DNA of 40,751 nucleotides from Macrostomum lignano (taxonomy: Eukaryota). This document shows, piece after piece, positions 11,608 to 40,751 of the stretch. The stretch is from contig NIVC01004605.1 in assembly GCA_002269645.1 (NCBI GenBank), positions 1 to 40,751 of the forward strand, in the 5' to 3' direction. The position numbers and the translations under genes were made by a program. Below the pieces are notes generated by a model, which was not told the origin of the DNA, ran no database searches, and saw only the letters and a list, made by a program, of their open reading frames with translations. Within the stretch, counting starts at the first letter, position 1. Every line of letters begins with the position of its first letter.

Positions 11608-11937
11608 TAATCTACGCAGAGGCAGTTTATCAATTTGACTATTGTGGTGACTGAATAGGTTTAATTGCTTATATTGTAGCTACCAGTGGCAATATTTTAA
11701 TTCTTACATTTTTTCTTAGCGGTTCAAAATCTGATGAATTTCTGTGAGAGCGGTATATATGATTTTAACATTCAAACCATAAAAAATTTACTATTGACAA
11801 CTGTTGGGACAATTAAAGATAACGCCTGTTTATAGGCGTTTGTAAATTTGTTTTACTTTGAAGACTTTTTACACAAATATTAAATTAATAAACTGCTAGT
11901 TAGCTTCTTGGTTAGAGGCAGGGGGCTGTTTACCCTG

Positions 11938-12246
11938 GTGCACTTTAAGCGACATTGTCACACAATCAGCGAGAGGCATTACTGCCCATTCCGCCGGCTC
12001 CCCTAAGCAGGCACACAAGCAAGCGCGCGGATATGTATACAGTCATTCGTAAAGGCACACACGCACACAGGGGTGTACAGTGGCTTTAACAATTTTTATC
12101 GCTAGGCATGTACACTTTACTGTGTCTTGAGGTTGGCCCTTAAGGCCGTTACTTGCATGAGCAGAGCCAAGCTGACTGCACTTGGAATCGAGTATGGACC
12201 GCTGGCACATCAGAACGCCGCGTTAGACCACAAGGCTACGGCCCCC
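11938..12246 (-). mobile_element. SINE family B copy with complete tRNA-like head
   Basis: Minus strand begins GGGGGCCGTAGCCTTGTGGTCTAACG (A-box-like) ... ACTCGATTCC (B-box-like), followed by a body shared with 2841-3158, 13445-13650 and 24005-24160. Confidence 0.82.
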
Positions 12247-13373: not shown

Positions 13374-16300
13374 ATGGCAGAAACTACAGAAGCAAGTCGT
13401 GCTACTCGCAGTGCATTTGGTAAGATGCGCGCATAGGGGGGTTTGGGGGGGGCAGAGCTGCTCAGCGGTGAACGCGTCGGATCAATATTGGCCAAGAAGG
13501 GTTTGTCATGCGATTCAAACCCCGATGACCAGTACTCAACACACAGAGAGTGTACATGTTGGACGATTAGACAGTCAAGGGCCGCTGTACACCCTGTGGG
13601 AGCATGTGTGTATGAATGTGTATTGGCGCGCTTGCATTTGCTCAGGAGTCAGAAAAGTTTTTAGGGCCTTCGGCGAGGGGTGCCACGAATATCCTACTAA
13701 ATATTATAAAAAGTATCTAATTGTTTGTTTTTAAATATATTTGTTTATAGATTAATTTTTGTTCTAAATTGCAACAAAAACTTACAGGCATCATTCAAGA
13801 TGTACAGGCAGTATCGAAGCTTCCCAGCTGGCAGGGAACATTCGGTGAGCATTTCTCAAGGAAACTTTAAGTAGAATATTTTTAATTGTCCTTTGCACTT
13901 CAACTATAACATACAGTTTTGCAAAACTTTTACAATTGTAGCTCATCAAAGGCTACTGCTAGTATTCGCTGATAAGATCACAGCAGAAATGGACAGATAC
14001 ATTGAATTTATGAGCTCATGTTGCGGCTTTTACAATGAGAAGCTCGCCCTGAACAGTCACCTTGCCGAATCCGAGACCCTGTCTCGAGCACCAGTCAGGC
14101 AGATTGTCTGCCTAGTAATTTTCTCCGCTTCGCAGCCACAGCGCTACATGAAGGACTACCTAGATTTTCTGAACCAATTTGACGAATCCGTGGATCAGCT
14201 ACTGCTGTACTGCAACTTGTCCGAGACAGAGACCCAAATCGATCAGGATCTGCGAAATCAATTCTGCAGCAGTGCTTTTCCTTATCGAAAGTCTAGCATT
14301 GCTTACACTTTCGGAACTTCCTATGGAGTCGGACGATTTTTTGATAAATTTAAGAACGATTGCAACTTGAAATGGAATCGTACTGTTGGCCTTTGTGACG
14401 TCCTGCTGGAATCACTTAATATAGACCAGTCGTCTGAACTTTACATTAAAAAGCCTAGAAGCGAAAAGTGCTTCTTCCCACGCGAAATATTTTACCCTTG
14501 CAGCTCACAAGAACTGATCAAAATAGCCGGCATTGAGTCCTTCACCAACCGAGTTGACCCGGATACTCTGGCGTTATACGGTGATTTTATATATCTGAAC
14601 AGCCGCATACAAAAGCCGCAGGCCTTGATCGTTCTAAACATCAAACTAGAGAGCGGCAAGACAAACAAGTCAATGCACGCAGACTGGAGGCGCCTTCTTT
14701 GGCTGTTTGATAAGCTCCAGTTCGAGGTCAAAGATGTTCAAACAGACGCGTCAAGCTGCAGTCAGCTTGAAGAATGCGTGAAGACTTTTGCTGATTCTGA
14801 GTTGCACGGTGACTCCTGCTGCCTGGTTGTGCTCTCCGAAGGCTGGCTAGAAAGCAGCTGCATTGACAGCATCAGTAAGAGCATGGCCTTCGGAAAGCTT
14901 ATCAAGGGTAAGCCGAGGCTGATCATCATTCAGGAGTACCAACCGAAGTCCTCACAAGCATCGGATGCTGCGCCGAAGTCGCTCCCCCAATTTCTGCCTG
15001 ACGCAGTGGAAGCGATGCGATTGCAGTTCAGAAACGACAAGCCTGAGGTCAGAGTCCATCCGCTAAGCGGAACCGTATGGTGTCAGTCCGAAGCGTCGGA
15101 CACCGAAAGCGACAATGCGACACTGCTGATTGAAATCATCTGCGAGACTTTCATCAATCACTCAGCCATCGAGGATTTGGTTTCGATGATTTCAATCATC
15201 AACGAGAGACTGCAGGACGCCCCACCCACTTGGTGTGTGCAGACTGCCAAACTTTTCTATGTTGGAAATACTGAGTTCACAGGGAGCGGAAGCGCTAGTA
15301 AGTTTATTTATGTCTTTAAAAAATGAAGGAGATTGTTTATTTCAAGTTTACTGTCAAAATAAATTTTCAATTTCAGGCAAGGCTCAATCCGAAAATACCC
15401 CTGAAAATCCTGCACCTGCAACCGATCCGTTAGCGACTTTGCAGACATTGCAAGGCTTAGCAGCAGAGTCGGACAGGCTGCGTCCCATTCTCGATCAAAA
15501 CAGTAAGTATGAACTAAAAATTTGAGACAAAGATCGATTTGGAGGTCCCAAAATTTTTGAAGCTATAAACTTAATGAATTTCAGATCGCCCTGGAGTAGC
15601 ACTGATTCTCACTGAAGGCTTGTTCGACAAAGTCCGAGATTATCAAATGTTTCTGGATTTTGCCGGCTTTCAAGTAATCTCGGAACGAATCGACGGTATT
15701 GGCGCTTCTTTGAGAGAAATTGTGACTTCATCGGCCGCTCAAAGCCCTCTAGCAGTTGTGCTGATCGTCAAGAAGCACCAGGTCGGAGCCGGCGTAGATG
15801 ATTTAATTGCGTGCATGTCGGAGACTGCAACCAAGCACGGAAACAGTTCCCTACTCATCTACTTTGAGATACTAGGTGCTGATGAGCCGCCTTCTGAGAT
15901 TCGCTTACCGAATGAACTGCCAGAGAAGTTCAGCATAGTTTGCTACCAGGGCACTCGAGACCGAATCGATCTCTGCCTCGACGTATTTCTAAAAACACCG
16001 AGAAAGAAACTTAAAAACAGTCCAATTGTGGGTTATAACTTTGAGAAGCTACCTTACAAGAAAAAAGAGCCAAAAATGATGTACCGATCCAGCGATAAAA
16101 ATCCTGGCTGGAAGCTGGCGCTCAAATGGCCAGAGAGCCAAAATATCAGGGGTGACGACATCATGAAACAGGACCTATTCCGCACAGCCAGTATGCGAGA
16201 GAAATGGTTCCCAAAGAAACCAATTCCACAGAATGTCACTATGCAGAGCAGGGCTCTAATCGTTCAGAATGTTGTCTTCAAATCCGGCGAGATCAGATTT

Positions 16301-17014
16301 GGCACCCAGAACGACTGTCAGAGGCTGACGGACTGCCTTACAGGCCTGGGGTTTCGAGTGTCAATCAGAACGAACCTCACGGCAGCTGAAATCTTGCAAA
16401 CTGTGCAGCTCTTTGCTGGTGCCAACGACCACGGCCGCTCCTGCGCCTTGGCAATCATGTCCCACGGATATCTGGGAAAAATTTTGGGATGCGACGAAAG
16501 GACTGTGAAAGAAGCAGATATTCTTGATCAGCTGAGCAAAGGCAGTGGGCTTCAGGGTAGATCAAAGTTTGTTGTGTTTCAAGCGTGCAGGCCATTGGAA
16601 GAACAGCATTCCAGCAGCTCAGCAGAGCGATTGATTAGACCCTATCCCGACATGGTGATTGCTCACTGCACCTCCCCAGAGGAGTTCGGTTATCGAAACC
16701 GCTTCGAGGGCAGCTGGTTCGTGCAGAGCCTGTGCTCCGTGCTGAATGAATGCGGAGCCGATGCGGACATCCTATCAGTGATAACTGCGGTGAACTGCAT
16801 GGTCCTGACCTGCTTCAATCGGTCCGACTGTAAAGAGCAGCGGACTCAGCAGCCGTGGTGGCTGCTGCAAACGAGAGGCGCTTTTGTGCTCGGCAGCGGC
16901 ACACCAATGAAAGAGATCGGCGACACCAATCGTAGTGCAGCTGCACCTGCTGGGAGCCGAAAGTGTCGGGCAAGCGTTTGGAAAAAGTTGGAGGCATTCT
17001 TCGCGAGGTGGTGA
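13374..17014 (+). CDS. Multi-caspase-fold protein gene 2, intact, ~1004 aa (four caspase-fold units, only the C-terminal one with a catalytic dyad)
   Basis: Exons 13374-13419 (ATG, MAETTEASRATRSAF), 13788-13844, 13942-15297, 15377-15502, 15585-17014 sum to 3015 nt (1005 codons); all introns GT-AG, phase 1. Terminal domain has AIMSHG (His 16463-16465), VFQACR (Cys 16586-16588), IRFGTQND and YRNRFEGSWFV. Exon 3 domain has VVLSEG / IIQEY (no His, no Cys). Confidence 0.9.
13445..13650 (+). mobile_element. Diverged SINE family B-related copy in intron 1 of caspase gene 2
   Basis: Head with GCTCAGCGGT (A-box-like) and GATTCAAACCC (B-box-like); body ACACAG..AGTGTACATG..GCTGTACACCC..GCGCGCTTGC..TGCTCAGG matches the reverse complement of 11938-12130. 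Confidence 0.65.
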
Positions 17015-17492
17015 ATTCATACTTCTTGTGTTTTTATTGAGAAACTTTGCTTACTTGCTTCTAAACTCCTGATTAGATAGTGTAATCTAATTTTTTCTCT
17101 GGCCTTATTATTTTTAGCGTTAAATCTAACTGCTAATGCTTTGTTTGAGTCTTATTAATATGAAGATCGCAGAAATTATGAAAAAATGTCTGACATTGAG
17201 GGTTGCTACAAGTCCGATTGGTTGTCATAACCAAACTAAAGTGCCACTGTAGTGGACTATATGCTGCACCGCAAATTCTAAAAACATTAGACGTTTTAAC
17301 TCAAATTAAAAAAGTGGTCACTATTTTTGCTTGAGTTCCTCAAATAGCTCGTAGAAATGTCGATTTCGCCTCAAGAGCTGATGCACCTGTTAGATTATAT
17401 TATTGTTATGGCTGTTGCAGTTGCCGAGGTATTTCTGTCAGTAAATAGCTGTTAGGTTCAATATGGCCATATTTTGCATTATTTGATACTCG

Positions 17493-17743
17493 TAACCGAC
17501 TGCTCAGCCGCAGCTATTGCGCGGCGCATCTGAAGGCTGCGTACGGCTGTTCAGTCCAAGAACTGGGGGGTCACCACACACCCTCAATTACCCCAGCGAA
17601 TGCTGGTAGCAGGGTGACCTGAAGCACTGCAGAGTTTAGTGTCTTGCTCAAGAACACAAATTGTTTTGTATAGGTCGAGAATCGAACCCCCGACCTTTCA
17701 GTCGCGAGTCCGACGCTCTAGCCACTAGCTAGGTCACAACCCC
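17493..17743 (-). mobile_element. tRNA-derived SINE family A (CORE-like central domain)
   Basis: Minus strand: GGGGTTGTGACCTAGCTAGTGGCTAGAGCG...GGTTCGATTC (A/B boxes), then TGTGTTCTTGAGCAAGACACT...GCTTCAGGTCACCC resembling the CORE-SINE domain; homologous to 35641-35912. Confidence 0.85.
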
Positions 17744-18434
17744 TCATTATATTTTGTATTATTTGAGACATTGAGCCAGTTGGAACAATCTCTAAGCGAA
17801 ACTGACCTTTTATGTGTGCGTGAAATGCAACGAAAAAGTGACCTAATTTTTTGGGATCGTAAGCTAATTGTATCGATCTAATACAACAGGTGATATGCAA
17901 CAACTTCTTAAAATGATTATTTTAAAGCCTAATAAAACTGAAAGCATGACAAGACTAACAAGAAAACTGTAAACTGTAAACAAGTGAACTGAAGCACTGT
18001 AACTTCCTGTATTTCATTGGCTCGCATTTGAGCGAGAACTTAAAACATTGTCAGATACTTTCGAATTTTTTAAATGCTACGAGAGTACGATTTAGTAGTC
18101 TGACTAATACTCTCTTATCTCGCGATGGCGAATAACTATTTTTATTGTCTTTAAAAATTCTAAATAGACTGGTACCTACATATTTACAGGCTACATGTTG
18201 TATCAGATACACTTCAGTGTAAACACTATAGTCTCTAATTCTCAGTGCTGTGTCATTGCAATGTTTCGCAAATTTGCGGCTTCTTTGCCAACGAGTATCT
18301 AATTGCTCACGGACAGGCTGTCGGATATTTGTTTAAGTTGCCTAGCTCGTAAATACAATGGCTCAAAAAACGCAAGAAAAAGTACGACCTCATCTTCAAA
18401 AATGGCGGCACTTGTACTTTTAATTCCATCTATA

Positions 18435-18520
18435 AGATAGATAGATATATAGATAGATAGATAGATAGATAGATATATAGATAGATAGATATATAGATAG
18501 ATAGATAGATAGATAGATAT

Positions 18521-18557
<37 letters not shown>

Positions 18558-18576
18558 CAGATAGATAGATAGATAG
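18435..18576. repeat. (GATA)n microsatellite, imperfect
   Basis: GATA units interrupted by GATATA and GACA variants. Confidence 0.95.
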
Positions 18577-18888
18577 TAGATAGCGAGAAAGAGCGAGCGA
18601 AGCGAGCTCTTTCGAGCTTGCTTGCCGCAGCCAATCAAGCTGAAAGCACGCACACAAGATCACCGGAAACGATTAAGGCAGCTGGAAAGCCAATGGGCGC
18701 GGTAAGCGCTTTTATCCAGAGGAACTACCTACTGGAACCAGCCATGCCGAACGAAAATCAGACTACTCAAGTAGTGCAAAAGAGTACGTGCAACTACCGA
18801 GAAATCTAATTTTCGTAACCGCTCCGGTGCAGGTCCTGGCTATAGATAGTAGATAGCGAGAAAGAGCGAGCGAAGCGAGTAATCGTAA

Positions 18889-19394
<506 letters not shown>

Positions 19395-19810
19395 GCACTC
19401 TCATATTTCCAAAAAAAGCTAAAAAAAGTTTTCACCGTGTTTCGCAGAACTGATGAAATCGTAAATTCGGGATAGTCCGTTTATATTAAGTTTGATAGTT
19501 AAATAAAAACGGGATAGCAACGTGTCCCTAGATAAAGAAATGATAATCGACGGGGTTTCTAATATATAATGACGGCTGACTTGGAGAGTAAAAAAGGTTA
19601 TTGTTACACACTTTTTAACAACTAGGCTCGTATTACACTAAATCTGAGAGCCGATTTTCGTTCAAATAAACAACATGCTTTGAATTTGAACTCAAGAAGA
19701 TTCTATCGTAATGTAGAACAGTTTAGAGAAGACGGCAATATAGGATCTTGAAGCAGCAAATATTTGATACTGAGCATAAATAGCTTTACTGCATTCAACC
19801 AGTTTTTCTT

Positions 19811-21480
19811 CTATAAGTGATTCTCCGACACCTCTCCGGAGAGAGGAATTCGGCTTGACTTGGGCTGCTGTTGTTCCACCCGATCCGCCATCGCTTCTGC
19901 CGGCCCTTCAAATAGACTCTGCGTACTAACGAGGAAAAACTTCTTATGCGTCTGCACTGTCCAGCATGGCAGTTGTAGTGACAGAACTTCTCCATTCAGT
20001 TCAGGCTGTTTAAATCCGCGAACCATGGCGAAGTTGATCCTGGTGAGCATGGAGACCAGATCCTCTTTATGGGCGAACTCGTAAAAGGTTGCGCACAGGG
20101 CTAAAATGAAGCGACTGCCGTAACTACTTCGAAAAGCGAAGTCCCCAGGCGATGTCGAATGGGCCACGATCAGCCCGCTCTGCTCAGGCGGCGGCTCAGA
20201 TCCGCTGGCAGGATTGCCTTGGTGAATGCCCACCTGGATGGCCATCTCCGTCATCATCGCGCAGACTCTCTCCGAGTTCGCCGCCAGTTTTCCGGCGACG
20301 GCCTCGCTCAAATCGATCCGACAGGCTTGAATGAGAACCAGTCTGGGCTTGGCCCTGACACCGGCGCCTCTGGACATCAGTTGGAGTATTTCAAACTCTT
20401 CAACGATGCCCAATTTTTCCCCTCTTCTGTAGTCTGTGCCGCAGATAATGCCGAGGCTACCGTGCGACATGATAGCCAGGACGCAAGCGTCTCCATGGCT
20501 GTCATCATTGGCAAAGTTTCTCACCGCCTCCCGCATCTGCTCAGCTGTCAGGTTAACCATTTCTGTCACACTGAACTGCATAAGAGTCAGCACGTGACGC
20601 AGGTTCTTAAAATCCATGTAGCTCTCGGGTCGATTCGAGGTTGGAAGCACGAAACTTACGTTATGAATTATCAGAGCTTTTTTAGTAGCACGATTTCCAA
20701 TGTAGTAAACCAGATCGTCAATCGGATTGGGATCAGTCTTCAGTCTCTCGGCTGTTTCGGCGTCCAGCTGCTTCAGGTGCGATCCGTCGCCAATAATTCT
20801 AGCGAACTCCTCCCTGTCCTTCAGCATTTTCACCGGCAGCCGTGGCTGGATGAACTCGCCAGTCAAGCCATTCTGCGTCTTCAACCTGAACTTATCGAAA
20901 ACTTCGCTCTCGATTTCGTACTGAATCAACTCGCCGAGACCTCTGCTGTGCCATTTTTTCTTTTTTAGATCAGCGAGCAGCTGCAGGAAGGTCCTCACTT
21001 CATCTCGCATCTTCACGGTGATGCTCATGAGCACCATGTTGCGCAGATTCCTTCGACACTCGTCTGGCCTCATCAGCTTAACGCAGTCGGCTTTCTCTTC
21101 GGAGTACGTGTTGGAGATTCTGCAGAATATAAGCAGCTTCTGTGTTGAGTCATTTGCAGCCAAAAGCAGTTTGACAATTTCGTCAAGGTCGGCGGGTTCG
21201 TCAGACTCAAGCAGTACGACCACAACCAGCTGTTTGGCGTCCTTCGCTACGCCCTCGATTTCATTTTTTATGTCGTTAAAATCGGTCGATGGTACATAGT
21301 TGACAATGAATCCGCAGCGGTCCAAGAAGCGCTCATAGTCGCGAACTTCTAAGCAGCAGTTGACTTCCTGATTGTATGTCTGGCTGAATATAACAGCCCT
21401 GCATTGTCCACTGAATGAAGGCAGCTGGACGGGTTTCGGCGTTGGCGTTGTTTGCGGACTCGGTAGCAAAATTGGTTCGA
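19811..21480 (-). CDS. Caspase gene 3: N-terminal degenerate caspase-like domain + caspase domain (one large terminal exon; upstream exon(s) not identified)
   Basis: 552-codon ORF; splice acceptor TTTCAG ends at 21481 (phase 1). Motifs KKALIIHNVSF, NRPESYMD, CVLAIMSHG (His 20464-20462), KPRLVLIQACR (Cys 20323-20321), LIVAHSTSPG..FR..GSRFI, QLPCWTVQTHKKFF. Confidence 0.9.
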
Positions 21481-23347
21481 CTGAAATTTAAACACATTAA
21501 GAATTTTTTTTTCAAAACTACTGATGAACTTACATGAACATATTACTTATAGTGTATGTGCAACAGCTCAGTTTTTGGTCTGTGGACCGGCTACTTCAAA
21601 CTACATGTAGTACCATTATATAGCATATAGTAGCATATGTACGAGTATATTGCAATAGTTATGTGATCGCAGATACCATTTTATATCTGCTGTACGCTCG
21701 TATACTGCTACCTGTACCAGCATTAGAAGTGCTTTGTCAGTGCCCCAGCAGCCCACACTGCACCAGGCCGATACTGCGCGACCCAACGCCAAAGTAGGCA
21801 ATCTCTCTACCCGGAGCGTCCTAATTCCCGGAGACCACTCGCTATATAATACCAATAGTAACAGTGGGCTGAGGGCCTGGGGCTTTGAAATCTTCACTTA
21901 CGCTACAAATTCGTACCTTAATGTAAGTAAACCTCGACATACTGCTAAAAAACAAGGGGTATTGCAAAATTTTCGCAAAATGTGTCTACTGCAAACGACG
22001 GAAAATATCGAAATTCTGAGCTGAGAAATTCTAGCTAAAACTCCTTGCACATCTGCTCTATTTTAAATGATGAGACTGTAAAGCAAAGGACTGAGTTTGG
22101 TGCCACTGTCACTCAGGTAAGAGTCATTCGAATTTCGCTTAAAAGTATTTCAAATAGCTAGTCTAAAGATTCATTGACAACCTCAAAGATATTAAAAAAT
22201 TAATATCTGTTAATATAAATTTAGAACGGCTTCGACATAAATAAAAACGAAAGCGTACCTTCGCCTTCGGTTTCGTTTGGAATATTTGTGGGAGCAGTCG
22301 ATCGTTTAGGGGCATCGCAAGCCTCGGCCATGGTGGGTAGCATCGGATGCTATATAGCTTGTTTTGTGGCTTCTGCTTGAAAACACAGCAACAAGAATGC
22401 ATAGCTACAGTGTATAGCTGCTTTTTATAGAACTTACAGTTAGAGGCTACATGTATAGAGCCCATTTATGGTGCCAAACGTAAATTGTGACGTCTGTTTC
22501 TATAATTAAACAGTTCTGGAAAAGAGATTTGCTAGATAGATACGCTTTATATGGCCTAAGGGCCCAGATATTCTGCAGTTTAATACAGACTGCTTTGCAT
22601 GATATGGAAGATACGAATTCAAGAAATATACGAGCGTACGATGCAATTTACGCAACTGTAATACACTACCGCTACAGTTTGACCAGTGCAATTTGCATTC
22701 GTTGCGGATGTGTTAGTTAAAGCATTGATAAATAAATCCGAAGATATAGCTACACAAATTAACTTCAGGGGCACATTGTAGCTGTACCTGTTATTAGCCA
22801 TTCTAAAAGAAAAGAGTCGAGATACAGCTTCTGCATGATCCCTTTGGTTTAATTTGTTTAATCAAATTCCTTAGCCTAATTAAGAAGCTAACGTTATGGA
22901 GCTAATTTTTGGGTGCCTTAATACTTAATTTGTTAAAAATTTAACTCAATGAAAGTACAAGTTAAGGAATATTTCACTTAGATAGAAATATAACTGCTAA
23001 TTTGATAAATAAATTGCTAAGAGTTCTAGGACATATTGACAGAATCGTTATCTAGTTGATAACAATTTCTAGAAGCGAAAAATGTTTAAGTAGTTATTGT
23101 GACTTCAGCACCGATACATAAGCGAGTACATGTAAGGCTTTTTGTCCAAGTTTGATTCACAATTGACTCAAAGTTATCAAAGTGACGTACTTGAATGCAA
23201 ACTTTCACAATCGGATTTCTTTATTTGATAAAATTGTCTCTTAGCAAAATTCAAATCATAGCGTTTTCAATTTTTAGAACATAGTCAGCTTGTCCAGCTG
23301 TCTTACAGTTTTCATTCATTCTCTTTCGCATTTTTCATTCTCTTCTG

Positions 23348-23998
23348 TTTGAAGATTGGGGGCCGGTGATTTTGCAGATTGAGAGCCGGTGGTTTTGAAG
23401 ATTGAGAGCCGGTGTTTTTGCAGATTGAGAGCCGGTGGTTTTGAAGATTGAGAGCCGGTGTTTTTGCAGATTGAGAGCCGGTGGTTTTGGAGATCGGGGG
23501 CCGGTGATTTTGGAGATTGAGAGCCGGTGGTTTTGGAGATTGGGGGCCGGTGATTTTAGAGATTGGGGGCCGGTGGTTTTGGAGATTGGGGGCCGGTGGT
23601 TTTGGAGATTGGGGGCCGGTGGTTTTGGAGATTGGGGGCCGGTGGTTTTGGAGATTGGGGGCCGGTGATTTTGAAGATTGGGTGCCGGTGATTTTGGAGA
23701 TTGGGGGCCGGTGATTTTGGAGATTGGGGGCCGGTGGTTTTGGAGATTGGGGGCCGGTGGTTTTGGAGATTGGGGGCCGGTGGTTTTGGAGATTGGGGGC
23801 CGGTGATTTTGAAGATTGGGTGCCGGTGATTTTGGAGATTGGGGGCCGGTGGTTTTGGAGATTGGGGGCCGGTGATTTTGGAGATTGGGGGCCGGTGGTT
23901 TTCGAGATTGGGCGCTGGTGGTTTTGAGATTGGAGGCTGGTGGTTTTGGAGATTGGGGCTGGTGGTTTTGGAGATTGGGGCTGGTGGTTTTGGAGATT
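23348..23998. repeat. 23-bp G-rich minisatellite (TTTTGGAGATTGGGGGCCGGTGG), ~28 copies
   Basis: Regular 23-nt period with GGGGGCCGG / GAGAGCCGG variants grouped in blocks. Confidence 0.95.
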
Positions 23999-24004
23999 TG
24001 TTGT

Positions 24005-24160
24005 TTCACTACAGGATTTGAATTCGGCAGCACATGCCCAAGTGTACATGCCGAATGATAAATAAGTTGTGTGAGTGTGTGTATGACTGCGTACGTATCC
24101 GCGCGCTTGTGTGCCTGCTCAGGGGAGTCGGCGAAATGGGCAGTAATTCCATCCGACATT
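24005..24160 (+). mobile_element. Partial SINE family B copy abutting the minisatellite
   Basis: AAGTGTACATGCC...GTATCCGCGCGCTTGTGTGCCTGCTCAGGGGAGTCGGCGAAATGGGCAGTAAT matches the reverse complement of the 2841/11938 copies. Confidence 0.75.
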
Positions 24161-24380: not shown

Positions 24381-25211
24381 CTACGAACGAATGTAGAACT
24401 CTCCAGGTGTTTTGTACAGAGCCGGATGAGGAATCAGCGGATACCTCAGCAGGTGGCAGGCAAGTCGCAGCGCATTAAACAGCACAGCCTCGCACTGACC
24501 AGCTTTGCACCTGGAAGTGCACTCGAGGCTGCTCATGGCGTGGTGAGTCCAGTAGAGCGGGCTGGTGTAGTTCGTGGCTGTAGTAATTGCGATGTAGTTC
24601 CTGGGTGACTCAGCAAAGCTGATGCACTTTGGGCTGCCTGGAAAAAATTGTTTTAAAAAAGGAACTATACGAATAGTTTTGATTTTCGATCTGTTTAGAA
24701 AAATCGTAGCTAACTACATTGTACCTGAGTACGTCAAGGCGTAAATAGAGTTTCTATCGCGCCCGCCGCACACCTGAGAGCGATCCCCCAGGCAGGACAT
24801 GTTGCACTCTTCTTTGCTGGCTGCAAACCCGTACCTGCCGTACGTATTGGAACAAGAGCAACAGCAGGCGTGCTGTACGCCAAAGTAGCTAAAGCCTCCA
24901 AGAGAGCAGACTGACGCACACAACTTCAGAGTCATATTCCTGTCAAAAACCACAGCCTGCTGGTAAAACATGCTGTGTCCGCCAAAATAGTGCACACCGA
25001 ACAGCGCATTCAGGTCTCTGGCCCCGGGCTTGTCTGAGTCCACGAAGCATCCAATATAGCTGTTGGTTGCCGGCCTTGCCTCAGCAGTTTGGCAGGATGT
25101 CAGCACTAGCAGGATGAGCAGAGAAGCTGAAGGCAGCAAGGCAAGAAGACGAAATGAACATCTTCCATCTTGCTGCTGTTGGATTGGCACAACTGTTTTA
25201 GTAGCCATCAT
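24381..25211 (-). CDS. Secreted WSC-domain + PAN/Apple-like domain protein, paralog 1 (~247 aa)
   Basis: Exons 25211-24725 and 24637-24381 (phase-1 GT-AG intron; stop 24383-24381). Hydrophobic signal LLALLPSASLLILLVL; WSC pattern SYIGCF..RDL..MTLKLCASVC..YFGVQ..CSC..C..C.G...CGG; second exon LECTSRC..CEAVLF..CHLL. Confidence 0.88.
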
Positions 25212-25712
25212 TCTTCTTTCCACTGTTTAAATTTTTCATCCGTCTTAAGCGTTGGATTATATATTGAAATTTCCTGCCAATTTGTAGCAATTCACAAATG
25301 TCACTCAAACTGAAGCGTCTCGATCTACAGGTTAATTGGCAGGTTGTGAACAAGTTTTTGGAGAGGAACAAATTGCAATTAAAAATGTCCATCGTCCGAC
25401 CTTGGTTCAATATTTACCCAGCAACTGGTATTATTTTCAAAATAAGAATACAAAGATGCTACGCAGATCAAATGATTTTCGATTTTAGTTTTGTCAATCA
25501 ATTCGATATAATTGATTGCTATCTGTCCTACTGTAAGTAACCCTTTTAGAGCGGTAGCATTTGAAAGGAAAATGTGCCTTAAGCCTTGGTTATAACCTTG
25601 CGTTAAAATTGAAATGAACTATAGCAAATCGAATATGTCATACGTATTTGTTTTTAAATCAACTAATTAGTTGAAACATACAATTCCATACACTTCCTTT
25701 CTGATTAAAAAG

Positions 25713-27673: not shown

Positions 27674-28505
27674 TCACACTCGAACGTAGAACTCTCCGGT
27701 CGTGTTGTACAGATCCGGATAAGGAATCAGCGGATACCTCAACAGGTGACAGGCCCGTCGACGCTCATCAAACAGCACAGCCTCGCACTGGCCAGCTTTG
27801 CACCTGGCGGTGCAATCCAGGCTGCTCATCACGTGGTCAGTCCAGTAGAGCGGGTCGGTGTAGGATGTGGGTGCCCTAATGGCGATGTAGTTCCTTGGAG
27901 CCTTTTTAAAACCGATGCACTTAGGACTTTCTGAAAATGATTTTTTTTTCAGAATAATCAAGTTAACAATACTTCATAAGATTTTAATAAGGCTCTTAGA
28001 ATCGTATCATTGGCTGAGTAGAAATGAACCCACCTGGATATGTCAGGGCGTAAACTGAGTTCCTTCCAAAGCCGCCACATATTTGTGAGTGATTTCCTTT
28101 GCATGTCGTGTTGCACCGGCTTTCGCTAGCAGCCATTCCGTACCGGCCGTAGGAATTCGAACAGAAACAGTGGCAATAGTATTGCAAGCCAAAATACTTG
28201 AAGACTCCAAGTGAGCAGATTGCGCTGCACTTCTCGATGGTCATGCTTGAACAGTTGTAGGCCGTGCCATAGTATGCGCTCATGGAATGTCCTCCGCTAC
28301 CGAAGTACGAAACACGGAACAGGCCGTCGAGGTCTCTGGCTCCATAGGTTCCCGAATCAAGGTAGCATCCTAAATAGCTGAAATTGGCCGGGCGTCCCTC
28401 GGCAGCAGGCGGTGACGTCATCAGGACAGCAACGGCGGCAAGTGACAGAATAGAAGCGAAACACGCTGTACAGGAGTCTCTGATCAGCTTTTTAGTCGTC
28501 GGCAT
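27674..28505 (-). CDS. Secreted WSC-domain + PAN/Apple-like domain protein, paralog 2 (~242 aa)
   Basis: Exons 28505-28034 and 27930-27674 (phase-1 intron at the same position as paralog 1; second exon also 257 nt). Signal FASILSLAAVAVLM; SYLGCY..RDL..MTIEKCSAIC..YFGLQY.CHCFC..C..C.G...CGG. Confidence 0.88.
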
Positions 28506-29580
28506 AGCGATGCACGTTTTCAAACGTCAGCTTGGCAATGAGTTTGGACTTTACCTCAAGAAATTGGATTTTTTTGTCGCTTTTTTATGCTGCTGTACTC
28601 GGTGCAGTAGCTCTCTCCAGGAATCATTTTCCTGATTGGCTCAGATCCAAGGACTTCCAGACAATTCCTTTAACTGCTAGTGGTCGTCGCTTATACGTTA
28701 GAGCCTGCAGCTATAGGTGTCAAAGTCTGGCAAAGTCTTTGCCAAAAGCACAGCAAAGCCATGCATCTTTCTTTCAAAAAGAGACAAACTTGCGCTCTCT
28801 CTGATGTTTTCCGCATCGCATTTTCAGTGCGACTTTGAGAAACCAAAAAGTATGTATGAAAAAAATTGGCTCATTAGCTAATATTAGATATACTCAGTAG
28901 TATGTCTCTCAAGTAGCATAATTGACACAAAATCAAGCAACTTTTTTGTTTTTATTAAGCTTTGAAATTTGCTTTTGCAGCTTTTTATTAGATGACGGCA
29001 TAAGTAGCCATGAGAAAAAATTGAATTTGATAGCAATGATGAGGACGCACTTTTTTCCAAATCCCGCGCTAGCACACGGGCTCTAAATTTACTAGCCTAC
29101 TAACAGTGGGCGATGGGCATTTTTATCCTTTTTCTGTAAATTGTCATAGAATCTATACTAGATATAATGTCTGGCCATACTAGTAGTCATAATAACATAG
29201 GCATTGCTTTTTGGGTCATAAATCATCGCTTTCGAAGCTGGTCTGACAGCCACCTGCGCCTCACTCAGTGTTGAGACGGGCGCCAGATGGTCTGAGAGGA
29301 TGCGGGCGGTAGCTTTTTTCTCATCGTTTTGACAGGCCATCAAGATTTATGAGGTCAGAGCCTATTGTTCGGATTCACTCAAGCGTGTGACAGCTTTGAC
29401 AGCTATGCGTTTTACCCCTAAAAGTACTTTGGGATTAGCGATTAGCAATTCCTCTTCATTATCTTCACTTTCTATTTAATAAGAGCTTTCTAATGTATAT
29501 TTTTTCATTAATTTCTGTCAATCCTACGCGAAAAGTCATAAATCATTTTGTTGCGATTTTGAGTGATTTATGGCCGCACC

Positions 29581-32115: not shown

Positions 32116-35100
32116 TTAGCTATCGCGGTCTCTTTGTTGCATAATCACTTCGTGAGCCAGCTGCACGGCGATGAAGATATCTTTATCGCCTCCTTTGTCT
32201 GGGTGATTTTTCAACTGGGCGGCTCTGTAGGCTTCCTGCAGTTCTTCATCAGAGCAGTACTTGTTCACATTTAATAGCTGGTAAGCAGCTTCAGTAACAA
32301 TTTCTTCCAACTGAGCCAACTGCTTCATTTTCAGTGCCTCTGATTCTGCTTGGTCTTCTTCGAAAAACATGCTCCAAAATTTGTCGCCCAAGTAGTGGTC
32401 AGCAAGGACGGAAAAAATAACGATGCCAGCTTCTACGAGTAGCACACATGGGCCACCGATCACCATCAAAGCTAGAATCGTTCCTGCAACAATTTCAAAA
32501 AAACATTATTGCCAAATTTTAAATAGAATTTTAATCTAACACAAATTCCCAAAGGAAGCTCAAGAGTACATGTAGCGTCAAACTATAAGAGATATGCTCG
32601 ATAGTATACTCATGCCCCCAATAAGTTGACCCCGGGCTTGTACGATTTGCACCCTAAAATACTCCTTCACACTCAGATTAAATGAGACTGAGTCTACATG
32701 TCCACATGCCTGACGACTATAGAAAGCCAGACCTGCATGTATGAGTACGTGTCTGCGTACATAATTGTGTGCTCAGGGTGCAGCCTGCGGAATGAACATA
32801 ACTACTTATCGCATCACTGACTGTGGCTCGACTGCAGTCTCGCTAACTAGCCAAACGAGACTAGCCAAACACATCAGTTTTTAAAGCCAGACAGTCTCAC
32901 CTCCAGTAGTGGCTGCCACAGTGCCGCCGAGTCTGGCCAGTTGCTTGTTCCTCTCCGCTTTGCTCAGTAGACTGCGACGGTAAGCCATTAGAATTTGATA
33001 CGCAGAGTAGGTGGTTGTTCCGACAAGCATTGCTGGGCCCAAAAATCTTCCGAACCCGGTTAAGGCCTTGCCAATCGTGGTGTAGCCAACGCTTTTGCAG
33101 ATTTGTCCCAAAACATTAGGGGATGTGACAACAGCTCTGATGACGCCGCCTCTGACAGCGCCGAACCCCGCGCTTCTGGCTATCCTGATGGCGCACTCGG
33201 AGCTGCTGATCTCCCCCGCGAGGTACCGGCGGACTTCCTCGTCGCAGGAGATCACGCCGGACAAAACTGCATCTACGAAAGCGCCAATAGCAGCTTCTAG
33301 ACCAATCTTTTTGATAGCGAAGTCCAGACTCTTGGTTCGGACTGAAGGATTCCTTAATCTGGCTTCTAGCCAGCTCTTGGCTTTGTTTTCAAGATTGGCA
33401 ACCTCCTTTTCCAATTGATTTCGCCTGGCTTTTTGCTTTTCAAATTCATTGTTTTTTGCTTGAAGATGCCGCGACAGACCCTTTTCAAAAGCCTCCCGTC
33501 TCTGCTGCTTGGTAAAGTTACTCTTTAGCTTTTCGATATCACTTTGCAATTTGGAAATGTCTTTGTTGCACTGGGATAGTTTTTCCCTATCACTGTCTCT
33601 TAGGCTATTCATTGTTGACTCCAGTTCCTTGTCCTGAACAGACTTCTGATGTTCTGCTGAATATTCGTCTTGAGTCCTTAGTTTTTCGCGTTTATTCTTC
33701 AACTTTTCAAGACGCTCTTCAGCATTTCTTAGCTCCGTCGGCTTATCAATTAGTTCATATATTTTGTCGTCCAGCATCTTTTGGTATTCGGCAATGTTGC
33801 CTTCATCCGGAACAAAAACTTGCCGCGCGCTGCCATCATGTTTGACGATGGCTTCGTGCTCTTGCAGGGACTTGATTCGAGCCTCGAGTTCAGCAACTTC
33901 TTGAATACCTTTTCTGAGCCCGTCGACTTCTTTCTGCAGAGCGTCAATCTTTTTTATTTCGGCTAACTTCGGTTTTATCTCAGCAAACACTGAGCTCATG
34001 GTCTTGTCCTGAAGGAAATCCCGAAATGTTTCCCTGTTCTGATCGAGGAACGCCCGAATGTTATCAACAGTGTCGGTCTCGATTTCAAAGCCAATCCGGA
34101 TTCTTGATTCTGCAGCACCTTCAGTGGCATCTGCGATGCCTTTGGGGCCAATCACGGTCACATTGTCCAGCTGCAGAGCTTCTGGGTAACCTTTAGCTTG
34201 TCCAAACTCGCGCTTTGATAGATTGCGGTTCCACTTGGCCCGCCAGTTGTTGATCGTGTCCACAAGGTTTTCAGGTGTGTCCGTGTACTTGAACTGCACG
34301 GCAAAGTACTCGCCAGTGTGGGTGTTTTGAAAGACTGCGTCCGTGTACTCGGGCGTCTTCAATTCGACATGATTCTTTATGGTGATCTTCCCGTTCCCAT
34401 CGCCGGCGTGCAGCACTATGGGAGCGCCGCGCCTCTGCACCTCCGCCATCACCTTCGCTATTTGAAGCTCCTCGAAAGTGATGCCTAGAAGTTCATTCGG
34501 ATAATAGTTTGGCTTGAGACTTTCTAGACAATTTGGCTTCTTCTTTAGCATTTCCGTTGCTGCCTTGACACCGCCATTGCGAAGTTCTTTCACAAACTGC
34601 GCCCACGGTTCGTCTGTCTCAAGTGAGCGGGTTGCATTTCGAGCTGCGTTGGATTGATATCCGATGTTTTTAGCGGCCAATTGAGCACCCTCTTTTTCGG
34701 ACTTTGCCTGCGTGAAGTTTTTGTATGCTTTTTTAAAGTCCTCCACCTCCTGTAAGCTTATGTCTTTCAACGCTTGGTCTCTCGATTTAACCCTGCCCGG
34801 ATCGCACTGAATCCGCAGCTTAATTTTATGAGTAAATGTCGCATCGGCTCTCTTGTCACAGGCGCCGCTAAACACAAGATTTACAATTTTCGTCCAAGTT
34901 TTCAGCTTGACTTCCTTCGCAACCGAATACTCAATTGTTCCCATTGTGGTAGCGGTGAGTTTGCCTTTAGCAATGAACACTGGCAGTTTAAGCTCCCGAT
35001 CGGTGCCATTTAAACTGTATTTAGCCTTGTAGAGTTCCATGACCACCTCACAGCTGACAGACTCTGGTGAGCACAGATGGAGCTTCGCCGAGATCGGTTC

Positions 35101-35601
35101 AACAGACAAGCTGACTGTTGAGGGCAAACAGTTCAGTTCTGACGCCTTGCAATCGACAGTAACGGCGTCATTAGTTTGAATCAGTTTAGGAAGCAGTGAG
35201 TTCATCGACAGCCTGTCGGAGATCTCTTCGTCAAACTGGAGTCCAATCTCGGTGAAGTAGCCGCTTATCCAGTAGCGATCCAGCTCTGGAAAGTCGCACA
35301 GCCAGTGCCTCATTTTTCCTAGCACGTCAGAATTGTCGCCACCTTCAAGAACTTCGCAATCGGTATTTCGTAGGCCACTCGAAATCAAAGTAAATTTCTT
35401 TTTAGAGTTTTTATCTATCGCTTTCGTTAAAAGCTCACTCGCTTCTGCAGTTTGAAAGGCGAATTTATCTCTCAGTTCACCCAGTATTTGTTTATGCACC
35501 TTCTCAATGTCTCTTTCTGGCAGTCGGCAGGGGACCTCCATTGCTTTGGCCATTGCCTGCTTGTAGATGTCTAAGCCATTCTCCACCGTTGTTGAAGACA
35601 T
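32116..35601 (-). CDS. Large multidomain protein (~1022 aa): helical N-terminus, putative PD-(D/E)xK nuclease-fold domain, coiled coil, Gly-rich hydrophobic helices, C-terminal J-domain
   Basis: Exon 35601-32901 (donor GGAG|GTGAGA, phase 1) joins in frame to exon 32483-32116 (acceptor TTGCAG). J-domain AYQLLNV...LQEAYR..QLKNHPDKGGDKDIFIAVQLAHEVI (HPD 32205-32197). Acceptor TTTCAG lies 3 nt upstream of the ATG, so more 5' coding exons are possible. Confidence 0.85.
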
Positions 35602-35640
35602 TGTCTGAAAGTTTTAGGAGGGTGTAGGTGTCAGTTAGGG

Positions 35641-35912
35641 GGGGGGGGTTATGGCCGGTTGGTTAGAGCGTCGGACTCAAGACTGAAAGGTCAGGGGGTT
35701 CGATTCTCGACCTACTTGGAATAGTTTGTGCCCTTGAGCAAAACACTTTAAAGTAAAGTATATTGCTTCAGTTCACCCAGCTATAAAATGGGTGCCAGCA
35801 TTAGCTGGGGTAATTGAGAGTGAGTGTGGCCGACCCCCAGTCCTTGGACTGAACAGCCGTACGCAGCCTTCAGATGCGCCGCGCAATAGCTGCGGCTGAG
35901 CTGTCGGTTGCA
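35641..35912 (+). mobile_element. tRNA-derived SINE family A (CORE-like), second copy
   Basis: TGGCCGGTTGGTTAGAGCG...GGTTCGATTC head; TGTGCCCTTGAGCAAAACACT...GCTTCAGTTCACCCAGCTATAAAATGGG CORE-like domain; tail shared with 17493-17743. Confidence 0.85.
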
Positions 35913-36667: not shown

Positions 36668-37467
36668 TTAGTGTGTACTCGTAGCAGTTGAAGAGATTAC
36701 CTGCCCGTTAAAATGACTTTCTATTTATTTCTGTATCTGCTGGCATTCTTGAGATGTGGGCATTTTTCTGCCCCACCCCCTGTGCTACTGCTACAAATTG
36801 CCATAAACCAAAGCTTTGTACCTGATGCACGGAACAACAAAACATCCGTCCGCAACTCTAAAGCTGAAGAAAGAACAGTCAAAGTTAATCATCAACGTTT
36901 GTCCAAAGGCTAATTATCCACATAGTCACTACTGTGCTGCACAACAACAAAATACGCTGTCAGGATGGCAAAAGTCAGCGTCACAGGGCGCGCTTCATGG
37001 CTTGGGCGCGAACAAAGGCCGCGCCACCGGCAGTGTCCGGGGCGCCGGCGTCAGCCAGCAGACAGTCGACATAACGCCGAGTTCGCGCTTGACCTCGCCG
37101 GTAGGGTGCCTGCAGCGTGAGCAGCAGCACCTCCTGCACCGGCTGTGGGCAGTACGACTCGGCGCGGATGAGATGGCCTGCGAGCTGGAGTCGCCGACGG
37201 CGCAGTAGATCGCTTGGACGTGGCAGGCCAGCGCGGCGATAGAGTGCCGCGTTGGTGACTCGCTCGACGCCGATGTTGAAGGCGGCGCGCAGCAGGCCAG
37301 CGTGCGCCGCATCGACTTGCTGTTCGAGTGAGTCCGTCAGCGTCCAGGTCTCGGCGTTGTACAGCACACATTTCAGCATCGTATCTCAAGAATGCCAGCA
37401 GATATAGAAATAAATAGAAAGTCATTTTAACAGGCAGATAATTCTCTTTTCAACTGCTTCACACTAA
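36668..37467. repeat. ~85-bp inverted duplication bracketing the LINE fragment
   Basis: 36683-36755 (AGCAGTTGAA...TTAAAATGACTTTCTATTTATTTCTGTATCTGCTGGCATTCTTGAGAT) recurs inverted at 37383-37467. Confidence 0.85.
36940..37380 (-). mobile_element. 5'-truncated non-LTR retrotransposon (RTE-like clade), C-terminal ORF2 fragment + short 3' UTR
   Basis: VLYNAETWTLT, RRRLQLAGHLIR and RRGQARTRRYVDCL resemble the post-RT region of RTE-type ORF2; markedly GC-rich; ends in a short (TTG)n tail at ~36940-36950. Confidence 0.82.
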
Positions 37468-38364: not shown

Positions 38365-38621
38365 CGACTAATTTTTTGAGTAAATACTACTGTAATAGGG
38401 CAGATATGCTTTTACACTACTGTCAGTAGTTGTAGCCAGAGAAAATATTCATGATGGGGCTAGATCGTGAATTTGGGACTTCGACTAATTTTTTGAGTAA
38501 ATACTACTGTAATAGGGCAGATATGCTTTTACACTACTGTCAGTAGTTGTAGCCAGAGAAAATATTCATGATGGGGCTAGATCGTGAATTTGGGACTACG
38601 ACTCATTTTTTGAGTAAATAC
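38365..38621. repeat. 117-bp tandem duplication (~2.2 copies)
   Basis: CGACT(A/C)ATTTTTTGAGTAAATAC starts at 38365, 38482 and 38599; the first two copies are nearly identical. Confidence 0.9.
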
Positions 38622-38792: not shown

Positions 38793-39656
38793 TCAATCAG
38801 AGAACTCATCCGAGTGATCCATTTGATGCTGATGAGTGCCGGCCGTTCGCGAGTCCAAATTGAGCACGGATCGCATAGCAACCGCGCCTTCGTGAGCTTT
38901 ACGATTTTTGCTGTCCAATCTGATTGCGATCTCGTAGTGCACCAGCGCCTCCTGCTGCTGGCCGCATCGGGAGTGACAGTCGCCAAGCAGGCGGTGCAGC
39001 TCCGCTGTGGTCTCACCAGCTGGCTCCTGCGACAGGTACATACACATTTGGGATAATTGGGATACTTAAGCGCTGGAGTACAGTTACTAGGAAGATTCTG
39101 GAGGGCCTCAACTTTGATTGGGAGATCATTTAGAATACTAACTGCTAGGGAGTATAGAGGTTGGATTATCCTGTGATGGGGAGGATGGATGCTGGATTAT
39201 CCGGTGATGGGGAGGATGGATGCTGGATTATCCGGTGATGGGGAGGATGGATGCTGGATTATCCGGTGATGGGGAGGATGGATGCTGGATTATCCGGTGA
39301 TGGGGAGGATGGATGCTGGATTATCCTGTGATGGGGAGGATGGACGCTGATTATCCTGTGATGGGAGGATTGATGCTGGATTATCCTGTGATGGGGAGGA
39401 TGGATGCTGGATTATCTTCACTGTGATGGGGAGATAGGACATCTACTTACCTGCTCAATCTTCTGCACGAGCAGAGCCTTGGCCTCTGGGTAGCGCTTCT
39501 TCTCCATGTACAACTCAGCCAGCACAGAGACGCACTCAGGCAGGCAGCCGCGACCGTTGAACATGGCGAAGGCGTCGGCGAGGATCTCGATGGCTTTGTC
39601 CTTGTTCTCGTAGGATGTGGCGAGGCCGTAGATGCCCAGAGTTCGAGGGTTTCGGC
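38793..39656 (-). CDS. ANAPC7: Anaphase-promoting complex subunit 7-like TPR protein, last two coding exons (gene continues beyond the window end)
   Basis: Exons 39656-39451 and 39026-38793 joined by a phase-0 GT-AG intron. LAELYMEKKRYPEAKALL and LHRLLGDCHSRCGQQQEALVHYEIAIRLDSKNRKAHEG match, from memory, the C-terminal TPRs of APC7 (LHRILGD...EA...Y..AL.LDP...K..EG). Confidence 0.72.
39163..39433. repeat. 31-bp intronic minisatellite (GGATTATCCGGTGATGGGGAGGATGGATGCT), ~9 copies
   Basis: GGATTATCC recurs at a 31-nt period; lies inside intron 39027-39450. Confidence 0.93.
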
Positions 39657-39724
39657 CTGGCAATCATTTTGGATGTTAAGTTTTTCTTACCTACTGTAAG
39701 TAATTTTAGGTTAAACTTTCCTTG

Positions 39725-40751
39725 AATGGCGATTCTTGATGATGGTTGATTGAGTGGCGATTCTTGATGATGGTTGATTGAGTGGCGATTCTTGATGATG
39801 GTTGGTTGAGTCACTTGAGTGGCGATTCTTGATGATGATTGATTGAGTGGCGATTCTTGATGATGGTTGATTGAGTGGCGATTCTTGATGATGATTGATT
39901 GAGTGGCGATTCTTGATGATGATTGATTGAGTGGCGATTCTTGATGATGGTTGATTGAGTGGCGATTCTTGATGATGATTGATTGAGTGGCGATTCTTGA
40001 TGATGATTGATTGAGTGGCGATTCTTGATGATGGTTGGTTGAGTGGCGATTCTTGATGATGGTTGGTTGAGTGGCGATTCTTGATGATGGTTGATTGAGT
40101 GGCGATTCTTGATGATGGTTGGTTGAGTGGCGATTCTTGATGATGGTTGATTGAGTGGCGATTCTTGATGATGATTGATTGAGTGGCGATTCTTGATGAT
40201 GATTGATTGAGTGGCGATTCTTGATGGTGGTTGATTGAGTGGCGATTCTTGATGATGGTTGATTGAGTGGCGATTCTTGATGATGATTGATTGAGTGGCG
40301 ATTCTTGATGATGATTGATTGAGTGGCGATTCTTGATGTGGTTGATTGAGTGGCGATTCTTGATGATGGTTGATTGAGTGGCGATTCTTGATGATGGTTG
40401 ATTGAGTGGCGATTCTTGATGATGATTGATTGAGTGGCGATTCTTGATGATGATTGATTGAGTGGCGATTCTTGATGGTGGTTGATTGAGTGGCGATTCT
40501 TGATGATGGTTGATTGAGTGGCGATTCTTGATGATGGTTGATTGAGTGGCGATTCTTGATGATGTGATGAGTGGCGATTCTTGATGATGGTTGATTTGAG
40601 TGGCGATTCTTGATGATGATTGATTGAGTGGCGATTCTTGATGATGATTGATTGAGTGGCGATTCTTGATGATGATTGATTCAGTGGCGATTCTTGATGA
40701 TGGTTGATTGAGTGGCGATTCTTGATGATGATTGATTGAGTGGCGATTCTT
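39725..40751. repeat. 28-bp minisatellite (GAGTGGCGATTCTTGATGATGGTTGATT), >=36 copies, runs off the window end
   Basis: Regular 28-nt period with GATGG/GATGA variants; upstream of the 39656 acceptor, so probably intronic. Confidence 0.96.

Follow-up and report, generated by a model that had tools for sequence, protein, structure and literature searches.

The analysed window is the whole 40,751-nucleotide stretch of Macrostomum lignano contig NIVC01004605.1 (assembly GCA_002269645.1, positions 1 to 40,751 of the forward strand). Between 32116 and 35601 its minus strand carries a two-exon gene for a protein with a C-terminal J domain, which an initial annotation, made from the letters alone, had proposed to be a fusion of a nuclease fold, membrane helices and a J domain. 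The features of this gene and of the protein that it encodes are as follows.

32901 to 35601, minus strand: coding exon 1, 2,701 nt, beginning with the ATG at 35601 and encoding residues 1-900 plus base 1 of codon G901.
32484 to 32900, minus strand: intron of 417 nt, GT...AG, phase 1, within codon G901.
32116 to 32483, minus strand: coding exon 2, 368 nt, encoding residues 901-1022 and the TAA stop.
34702 to 35601, minus strand: N-terminal domain (N-domain), residues 1-300, delimited from the AlphaFold2 model and the alignment.
33997 to 34509, minus strand: PD-(D/E)xK-like (restriction-endonuclease-like) domain, residues 365-535.
34471 to 34473, minus strand: codon E377, the invariant acidic residue of the first core helix, beside F376.
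34396 to 34404, minus strand: codons G400-D401-G402, the invariant loop after core strand 1.
34339 to 34341, minus strand: codon D421, the invariant Asp just before core strand 2 (the 'PD' position).
34288 to 34296, minus strand: codons Q436-F437-K438, the invariant QxK ending core strand 3 (the '(D/E)xK' position).
33352 to 33984, minus strand: charged helical spacer, residues 540-750, with 38-48% K/R/D/E and only 3 Pro and 5 Gly in 211 residues.
32380 to 33339 (span including the intron), minus strand: membrane module, residues 755-935.
32125 to 32292, minus strand: J domain, residues 965-1020, with the HPD motif at residues 994-996 (32197-32205).

Splicing of the two exons (donor GT at 32900, acceptor AG at 32485-32484, minus strand) gives a product of 1,022 residues that is 100% identical to the M. 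lignano protein BOX15_Mlig024987g1, annotated merely as 'hypothetical' or 'J domain-containing protein'. NCBI has three M. lignano accessions, from three contigs, for this identical protein, and two more M. lignano entries (912 and 1,022 residues) fall into the same 90% cluster. An in-frame TAA lies 12 nt 5' of the ATG at 35601, the N-termini of the homologues align at the M. lignano start methionine in the family alignment, and an AATAAA signal overlaps the stop codon (32116-32111, minus strand). This is an intact, conserved M. lignano gene. The open reading frame (ORF) claimed by the initial annotation is therefore real, most of the protein does come from one 2.7-kb exon, and the quoted strings are all in place: G373-ITFEE378, Y419-TDAVF424, F433-AVQFKY439, three Gly/Ala-rich hydrophobic stretches and HPDKGG at residues 994-999. 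A likeness of the N-terminus to the helical domain of GBP-type GTPases and the existence of further exons upstream were rejected on the lack of a Pfam match, the common methionine start and the in-frame stop before the ATG. A tttcag acceptor is located at 35602-35607 on the minus strand, its end 3 nt 5' of the ATG. Spliced-leader trans-splicing is known in M. lignano, and this acceptor is a candidate for either a 5'-untranslated-region intron or a spliced-leader trans-splice site.

The J domain is the only part of the protein with significant sequence support. Pfam PF00226 (DnaJ) matches residues 967-1020 with 37.0 bits against a cutoff of 27.8 (E 3.8e-9), so that the C-terminal J domain with HPDKGG read in the initial annotation stands above Pfam's own threshold. 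J domains in the PDB (dnj-12, Sis1, DNAJA1) align at E 1.8e-4 and weaker, Tim14 being among the matches. The HPD tripeptide that J domains carry between helices II and III is present, and HPDK is kept in 11 of 11 aligned C-terminal family sequences. The domain starts about 30 residues past a D(H/Y)(F/Y)LGDK motif. For the rest of the protein, no match was found in Pfam, NCBIfam or PDB sequences.

Relatives were detected by an exhaustive HMMER search (phmmer) with residues 1-540 against 1.84 billion representatives. At E ≤ 1e-3 this returned 25 proteins including the query (24 others), with 8 at ≤ 1e-10 and 4 at ≤ 1e-30, and none of them was prokaryotic. Word-indexed searches with the full protein, the hydrophobic module or the family alignment returned the query itself at most and no relative, so the family is detected solely by the exhaustive search. 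The named relatives, all annotated as 'uncharacterized', come from Lottia gigantea (V4CCF3, 945 residues, plus a fragmentary second locus), the eel Gymnothorax javanicus (KAJ8273946, 911 residues), Dendronephthya gigantea (XP_028396446, 959 residues) and Clytia hemisphaerica (XP_066922514, 998 residues). All are animal (Cnidaria, Mollusca and Chordata, the last a teleost), which together with the flatworm makes four phyla. The remaining matches are metagenome or transcriptome sequences with the same architecture and, where their DNA could be read, the gene is split into successive ORFs as it would be by eukaryotic introns. Full-length members have a common order of parts, namely N-domain, nuclease-like domain, charged helical region, hydrophobic module and J domain, and Pfam recognises DnaJ alone in them. 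The literature search returned no paper citing any of the family accessions, and a fusion of PD-(D/E)xK, membrane and J-domain parts is not mentioned in the 2012 survey of the superfamily (PMC3424549) or in the other literature searched. Judged by sequence, this is a previously undescribed animal family, present in corals, hydrozoans, limpets, flatworms and an eel.

Some variation was seen at the loci of the relatives. Clytia has a tandem paralogue (10352-12865 of CACVBU010000702.1), about 30% identical and roughly 4-6 kb upstream of the Clytia gene, and an annotated Clytia isoform of 660 residues lacks the N-domain. The Dendronephthya homologue (10001-12880 of RSEI01001075.1) is intronless and, in antisense orientation, is nested in a large Ig-domain gene that spans 6465-21356.

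The nuclease-like domain was examined in an alignment of 21 sequences that are 24-39% identical to the query over this domain. F376, E377, G400, D401, G402, D421, Q436 and K438 are invariant in all 21, and G373, G404, T416, P417 and P486 are nearly so. In the canonical PD-(D/E)xK site, core strand 2 has an Asp at its N-terminus and strand 3 carries the (D/E)xK (PMC3424549), and replacement of ExK by QxK is the catalytic variant of Mrr, PD-QxK (PMC11037411). At an identity of 24-39%, the invariance of D421, Q436 and K438 is more than would be expected by chance. The initial annotation had picked out E378, D421, Q436 and K438 as residues that homologues should conserve; the last three are conserved throughout, but E378 is variable (E/N/H/K/Q/G) and it is its neighbour E377 that is invariant. 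The G400-D401-G402 motif is an additional invariant feature beyond that list.

AlphaFold2 models calculated from these alignments were confident for residues 1-545 (predicted local distance difference test score, pLDDT, 84.4) and for residues 355-545 (pLDDT 88.5, predicted template modelling score 0.82). The predicted elements are a helix (368-391), a strand (395-399), an inserted hairpin (405-408, 412-415), two further strands (422-426 and 432-437), a helix (443-461), a strand (482-484) and then more helices. The model of residues 355-545 thus contains the alpha-beta-beta-beta-alpha-beta core of the PD-(D/E)xK superfamily, with D421 placed before strand 2 and Q436 and K438 on strand 3. The expectation that region 370-520 would model as a PD-(D/E)xK alpha/beta fold is borne out to this extent: residues 365-535 are modelled confidently and the order of the core elements matches.

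Searching with the same model in Foldseek placed it among nucleases of this superfamily. The best PDB match was Can2 (8q3z_A; E 0.03, probability 0.66, template modelling (TM) score 0.32, 171 aligned columns), and the top 14 rows, as well as 26 of the 50 top rows, were PD-(D/E)xK nucleases, representing 12 different proteins: Can2, PfoI, PaqCI, the XisH-like 2okf, NucS, DrdV, MunI, Card1, EcoO109I, BamHI, BsoBI and Bax1. Equally, almost all functionally named matches in BFVD (best match E 1.5e-3) were nucleases of the superfamily, including a 'PD-(D/E)XK endonuclease-like' protein (E 3.4e-3), a viral 'type IV Mrr domain' protein (probability 0.87), RecE, alkaline exonucleases, RecB-family and VRR-NUC proteins, a T7-type endonuclease I and DUF2726. 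The structural comparison proposed in the initial annotation leans towards the fold, in that the neighbours in two libraries are overwhelmingly PD-(D/E)xK nucleases, none of them individually significant. Residue conservation and model together suggest a nuclease domain that is probably active, and probably a new, Pfam-unassigned family of the PD-(D/E)xK superfamily with an architecture that has no earlier description.

The N-domain is predicted to consist of helices followed by an elongated antiparallel beta-sheet with very long strands (about 181-197, 200-233 and 250-266). The motifs HNPxxV and WxKxxSLGINxxFD are conserved in the family, the second being degenerate in M. lignano. Searches of the N-domain against Pfam and with PDB profiles were empty. 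When the whole model (residues 1-545) was used in Foldseek, the list was headed by monalysin, Cry51Aa, parasporin-2, Cyt1A, epsilon toxin and gasdermin B/E. Identification of the N-domain as an aerolysin-like beta-pore-forming toxin or gasdermin was rejected, since the Foldseek probability is ≤ 0.14, the TM score is ≤ 0.1 and the Pfam and PDB profiles are empty; the likeness of the model to beta-pore-forming toxins is a resemblance only, a lead and not a finding.

Between the nuclease-like domain and the membrane module, the initial annotation had placed a coiled coil of about 200 residues. A charged, helical region poor in Pro and Gly is indeed found there, but the 3.5-residue periodicity of residues 540-750 is not above that of shuffled controls, and from its composition a coiled coil is plausible. 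The Gly/Ala-rich hydrophobic helices that follow are real and conserved across the family: the module holds four to five hydrophobic helices, of which only the last stretch (about 891-934) is strongly hydrophobic, the other segments being moderate. The module is an internal tandem duplication with homologous halves (hhalign probability 79%, E 1.6e-5), and three helices make up its repeat unit: one hydrophobic, one amphipathic ('Y..G(E/D)IT..E') and one both Gly-rich and hydrophobic. The module closes with the stretch of about 44 hydrophobic residues, with a central GGP and a Kyte-Doolittle peak of 2.3, which fits a helical hairpin. The D(H/Y)(F/Y)LGDK motif, conserved in the family, follows the predicted hairpin, and F/L-W comes after it in most members. 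At the other end of the protein, a signal peptide is absent from the N-terminal sequence as read by eye, without a predictor.

Parts of this architecture resemble known systems. With nucleases of the Mrr/MspJI type (Mrr_cat, 'PD-QxK') the domain shares the F-E pair in helix 1, a loop of the G-D-G-G type, the Asp of strand 2 and the Q-x-K of strand 3. The spacing from D to Q is 15 residues here and about 14 in E. coli Mrr (counted over GGID...VQAK), and the viral Mrr-domain protein also ranks high among the structural neighbours. Unlike Mrr, it has an extra beta-hairpin, some 15 residues long, that separates the GDG loop from the Asp strand, and it sits in a eukaryotic multidomain context with neither a DNA-modification reader nor a nucleoside triphosphatase partner; between the two there is no detectable sequence or profile similarity. 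The top PDB neighbours, Can2 and Card1 (6xl1_A), are PD-(D/E)xK ancillary effectors of type III clustered regularly interspaced short palindromic repeats (CRISPR) systems and likewise attach an effector nuclease to a regulatory module. The M. lignano protein differs from them in having no CARF sensor domain and in its QxK motif, at an identity of 8-10% and TM scores of 0.26-0.32.

The membrane part finds its closest parallels in Tim14/Pam18 and DNAJB12/14, in which an HPD J domain stands beside a membrane anchor, as it does here, presumably so that Hsp70 is recruited to the surface of a membrane. They differ in having one transmembrane helix only and in lacking an enzymatic domain; the M. lignano J domain follows a duplicated Gly-rich hydrophobic module on its C-terminal side and is fused to about 750 residues of other domains. 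To our knowledge, no well-known animal protein other than sacsin combines a J domain with a domain of nuclease fold (HEPN); sacsin differs in having HEPN instead of PD-(D/E)xK, another order of domains, no membrane module and no sequence relationship. Finally, the long-stranded antiparallel sheet in the N-domain model is what aerolysin/ETX-MTX2-type toxins and gasdermins share with this protein, as seen in the head of the Foldseek list; unlike them, it gives no Pfam or PDB sequence signal and has no signal peptide visible by eye.

The initial annotation had regarded the protein as unusual for an animal and had suggested a horizontal or retro-origin. Neither suggestion held. The taxonomic comparison that it had called for, of bacterial with animal matches, gave named relatives from animals only and, among the 1.84 billion representatives, zero prokaryotic ones. 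The Gymnothorax gene has a phase-1 intron within codon 802, which the family alignment places in one column with codon 901 of M. lignano; given an indel of one residue 7 positions further downstream, the match of intron position is exact to within one codon. The Clytia, Macrostomum and Gymnothorax genes have one intron each, that of Clytia separating two exons exactly at the N-domain boundary, while the Dendronephthya gene has none and a single exon encodes residues 12-945 in Lottia. Long exons are also normal in the window, where caspase-like ORFs run uninterrupted for 464-552 residues. The intron shared by flatworm and teleost, the animal-only distribution and the lack of prokaryotic relatives point to vertical inheritance. 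At the level of sequence, this argues for a gene that an early animal ancestor already had and that has been lost many times since. It is possible that the nuclease domain by itself entered the stem lineage of animals by an ancient transfer.

A recent acquisition from bacteria, or retroposition, of a toxin-like gene would explain the single 2.7-kb exon. It would also sit easily with an intron-poor family, with the patchy distribution among animals and with the fact that D...QxK nucleases are best known from prokaryotic restriction and defence proteins. Nevertheless, we consider it extremely unlikely in view of the shared phase-1 intron, the long single exons of neighbouring genes and the failure of the search to return any prokaryotic relative, while the named relatives come from three animal phyla besides the flatworm and the others have a eukaryote-type architecture with genes split as if by introns.

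Elsewhere in the window, an array of caspase-like genes lies about 11 kb from the J-protein gene, and further genes and mobile-element remnants were observed.

4353 to 5297, plus strand: mariner/Tc1-like transposase ORF, 314 residues (HTH_Tnp_Tc3_2, E 1e-5, below the gathering score).
7887 to 9347, plus strand: caspase-like gene.
10081 to 11607, plus strand: caspase-like gene.
13893 to 15326, plus strand: caspase-like gene, similar to 7887-9347 but without a Pfam match.
15620 to 17014, plus strand: caspase-like gene.
19811 to 21469, minus strand: caspase-like gene.
24714 to 25223, minus strand: small gene with a signal-peptide-like N-terminus and a Pfam WSC match (E 5e-13).
27996 to 28523, minus strand: paralogue of the preceding gene, likewise with a signal-peptide-like N-terminus and a WSC match (E 5e-15).
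36981 to 37379, minus strand: ORF 1.4 kb upstream of the J-protein gene, resembling by eye the C-terminal end of a reverse transcriptase from a retrotransposon without long terminal repeats ('ETWTL...'); no Pfam match at E ≤ 0.01.

The caspase-like genes have long N-terminal extensions and SHG...QACR motifs, and Pfam Peptidase_C14 matches four of the five ORFs tested (E 4e-11 to 7e-35). The J-protein itself contains two tetrapeptides of the caspase-8 type, LETD at residues 327-330 (34612-34623), in a disordered (low-confidence) linker before the nuclease-like domain, and IETD at residues 507-510 (34072-34083). The idea that these are caspase sites was rejected, as two such motifs, LETD330 and IETD510, match the chance expectation of about 1.6 and caspase neighbours are not conserved elsewhere. 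Upstream of the J-protein gene, tRNA-like boxes (GGTTCGATTCTCGACC) are present at 35650-35730 (plus sense), 50-130 nt before the ATG. A tRNA gene at this position was discarded because neither ARAGORN nor Rfam recognised it, even at E ≤ 1, and the stretch may be a remnant of a short interspersed nuclear element. The window also holds large tandem arrays at 1-989 (43 copies of a 23-nt unit), 23348-23998 (28 copies of a 23-nt unit) and 39722-40751 (37 copies of a 28-nt unit), the second of which gives rise to Pro-rich repeat ORFs at 23312-24159. Further repeats lie at 18435-18583, 18889-19394, 38365-38621 and 39148-39416, and long (AGAT)n and (ATAG)n microsatellites produce 'SIYL' repeat ORFs.

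Taken together, we favour, with moderate confidence, a multidomain membrane protein of a new animal family that carries a probably active nuclease and its own recruiter of Hsp70. The terminal hydrophobic hairpin, perhaps together with three weaker hydrophobic helices, would anchor the protein in an intracellular membrane. The N-terminal part, including the nuclease-like domain, and the J domain would both be cytosolic, given the lack of a signal peptide and the central GGP turn that fits a hairpin. The PD-(D/E)xK-like domain would act as a metal-dependent nuclease of the Mrr D...QxK type, with the second acidic ligand coming from E377 and/or D401, while the charged helix would keep it off the membrane and may oligomerise it. 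The J domain would stimulate the ATPase of Hsp70/Hsc70 and so load the chaperone on nearby clients or on the protein itself, in the latter case for insertion or for the assembly or disassembly of oligomers. In the weakest step of this proposal, the protein would degrade nucleic acid at the membrane surface in stress or defence. A role in defence, stress or death is suggested only circumstantially, by the patchy distribution, the tandem paralogue in Clytia, the intron-poor structure, the prokaryotic defence associations of such nucleases and the adjacent caspase array.

Several results weigh against this reading. No single Foldseek match to the model of residues 355-545 reached E ≤ 1e-3 in PDB or BFVD. 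Scans of the 21 domain sequences with Pfam, NCBIfam and PADLOC and a PDB sequence profile search gave noise only (HslU at E 0.02; Mrr_cat_2 at E 0.12 in one of the 21 members), and hhalign against E. coli Mrr and against a 54-sequence bacterial Mrr profile of low diversity gave probabilities ≤ 0.2. Membership of the Mrr_cat family itself (PF04471 / PF13156) accordingly finds no support, the query having no Pfam match and hhalign being negative. The alignment behind the models is only 21 sequences deep, and the five invariant polar residues were located by the order of elements along the model alone. One member of 372 residues (P0020) has the C-terminal half of the N-domain joined directly to the hydrophobic module and J domain, with neither the nuclease-like domain nor the charged spacer, and so the domain is not obligatory for every member; the modules may be separable, P0020 being a possible fragment or isoform. 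The PD-(D/E)xK superfamily is notorious for sequence divergence, which makes the negative sequence profiles unsurprising, but look-alike cores exist in unrelated proteins (PMC3424549), and the fold match was for this reason weighed jointly with the invariant residues of catalytic type. The lack of a significant Foldseek match, the negative sequence profiles and the look-alike cores, together with significant sequence support for the J domain only, would suit a protein in which residues 365-535 merely resemble a restriction-endonuclease core. It would then act essentially as an adaptor, a J-protein anchored in the membrane that recruits Hsp70 to the surface of an organelle, its invariant polar residues serving to bind a ligand, a nucleotide or nucleic acid or forming a protein-protein interface. 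We judge this unlikely, because the invariant residues reproduce the catalytic template on the expected elements (Asp before strand 2, QxK on strand 3, Glu in helix 1), and because 14 of the 14 top PDB neighbours and almost all named viral ones are true nucleases of the superfamily, not assorted alpha/beta folds.

The neighbourhood and the N-domain bring up a further alternative, a cell-death or antiviral executioner in which the N-domain sheet and/or the Gly-rich helices would make membranes permeable, as beta-pore-forming toxins, gasdermins or glycine-zipper channels do, and the nuclease destroys nucleic acid upon activation by Hsp70 or by caspase cleavage of the linker. Pore-formers head the Foldseek list of the whole model, at least four caspase-domain genes form an array about 11 kb away from the gene, LETD330 is in a low-confidence linker, and the Clytia tandem paralogue, patchy phyletic distribution and paucity of introns are typical of immune genes. 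However, the structural matches to pore-formers are very poor, profile searches of the N-domain are empty and the caspase-type motifs are no more frequent than chance would give; moreover, the linkage to caspases is not kept at the Lottia, Clytia, Dendronephthya and Gymnothorax loci. Such an executioner is, in our view, very unlikely. It is also quite unlikely that the family represents an ancient animal innate-immunity or cell-death executioner, lost in most model lineages, that resides in a membrane and combines a membrane-perturbing module, formed by the beta-sheet N-domain and/or glycine-zipper helices, with a nuclease of the restriction-enzyme type; Hsp70, brought in by its own J domain, would restrain or activate it. 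If true, animals would have a counterpart of those defence effectors of prokaryotes in which a membrane activity is coupled to a nuclease.

Apart from those in DNA repair and RNA processing, PD-(D/E)xK nucleases are few in animals and, within the searches made, no animal nuclease of this superfamily has been described in a membrane protein with a J domain. The family adds three conserved modules that Pfam leaves unassigned, namely the N-domain, the nuclease-like domain and the duplicated 'GEIT' hydrophobic repeat. It also offers a caution, in that an intron-poor animal gene of bacteria-like look turned out to be vertically inherited. Members are present in tractable organisms, Macrostomum (with RNA interference and transgenesis) and Clytia. 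If the domain is active, the preferred reading of a membrane-anchored nuclease with its own J domain would mean a new route by which a nuclease is placed on a membrane surface under the control of Hsp70, with a bearing on the clearance of organelle or foreign nucleic acid, on stress responses and on regulated cell death.

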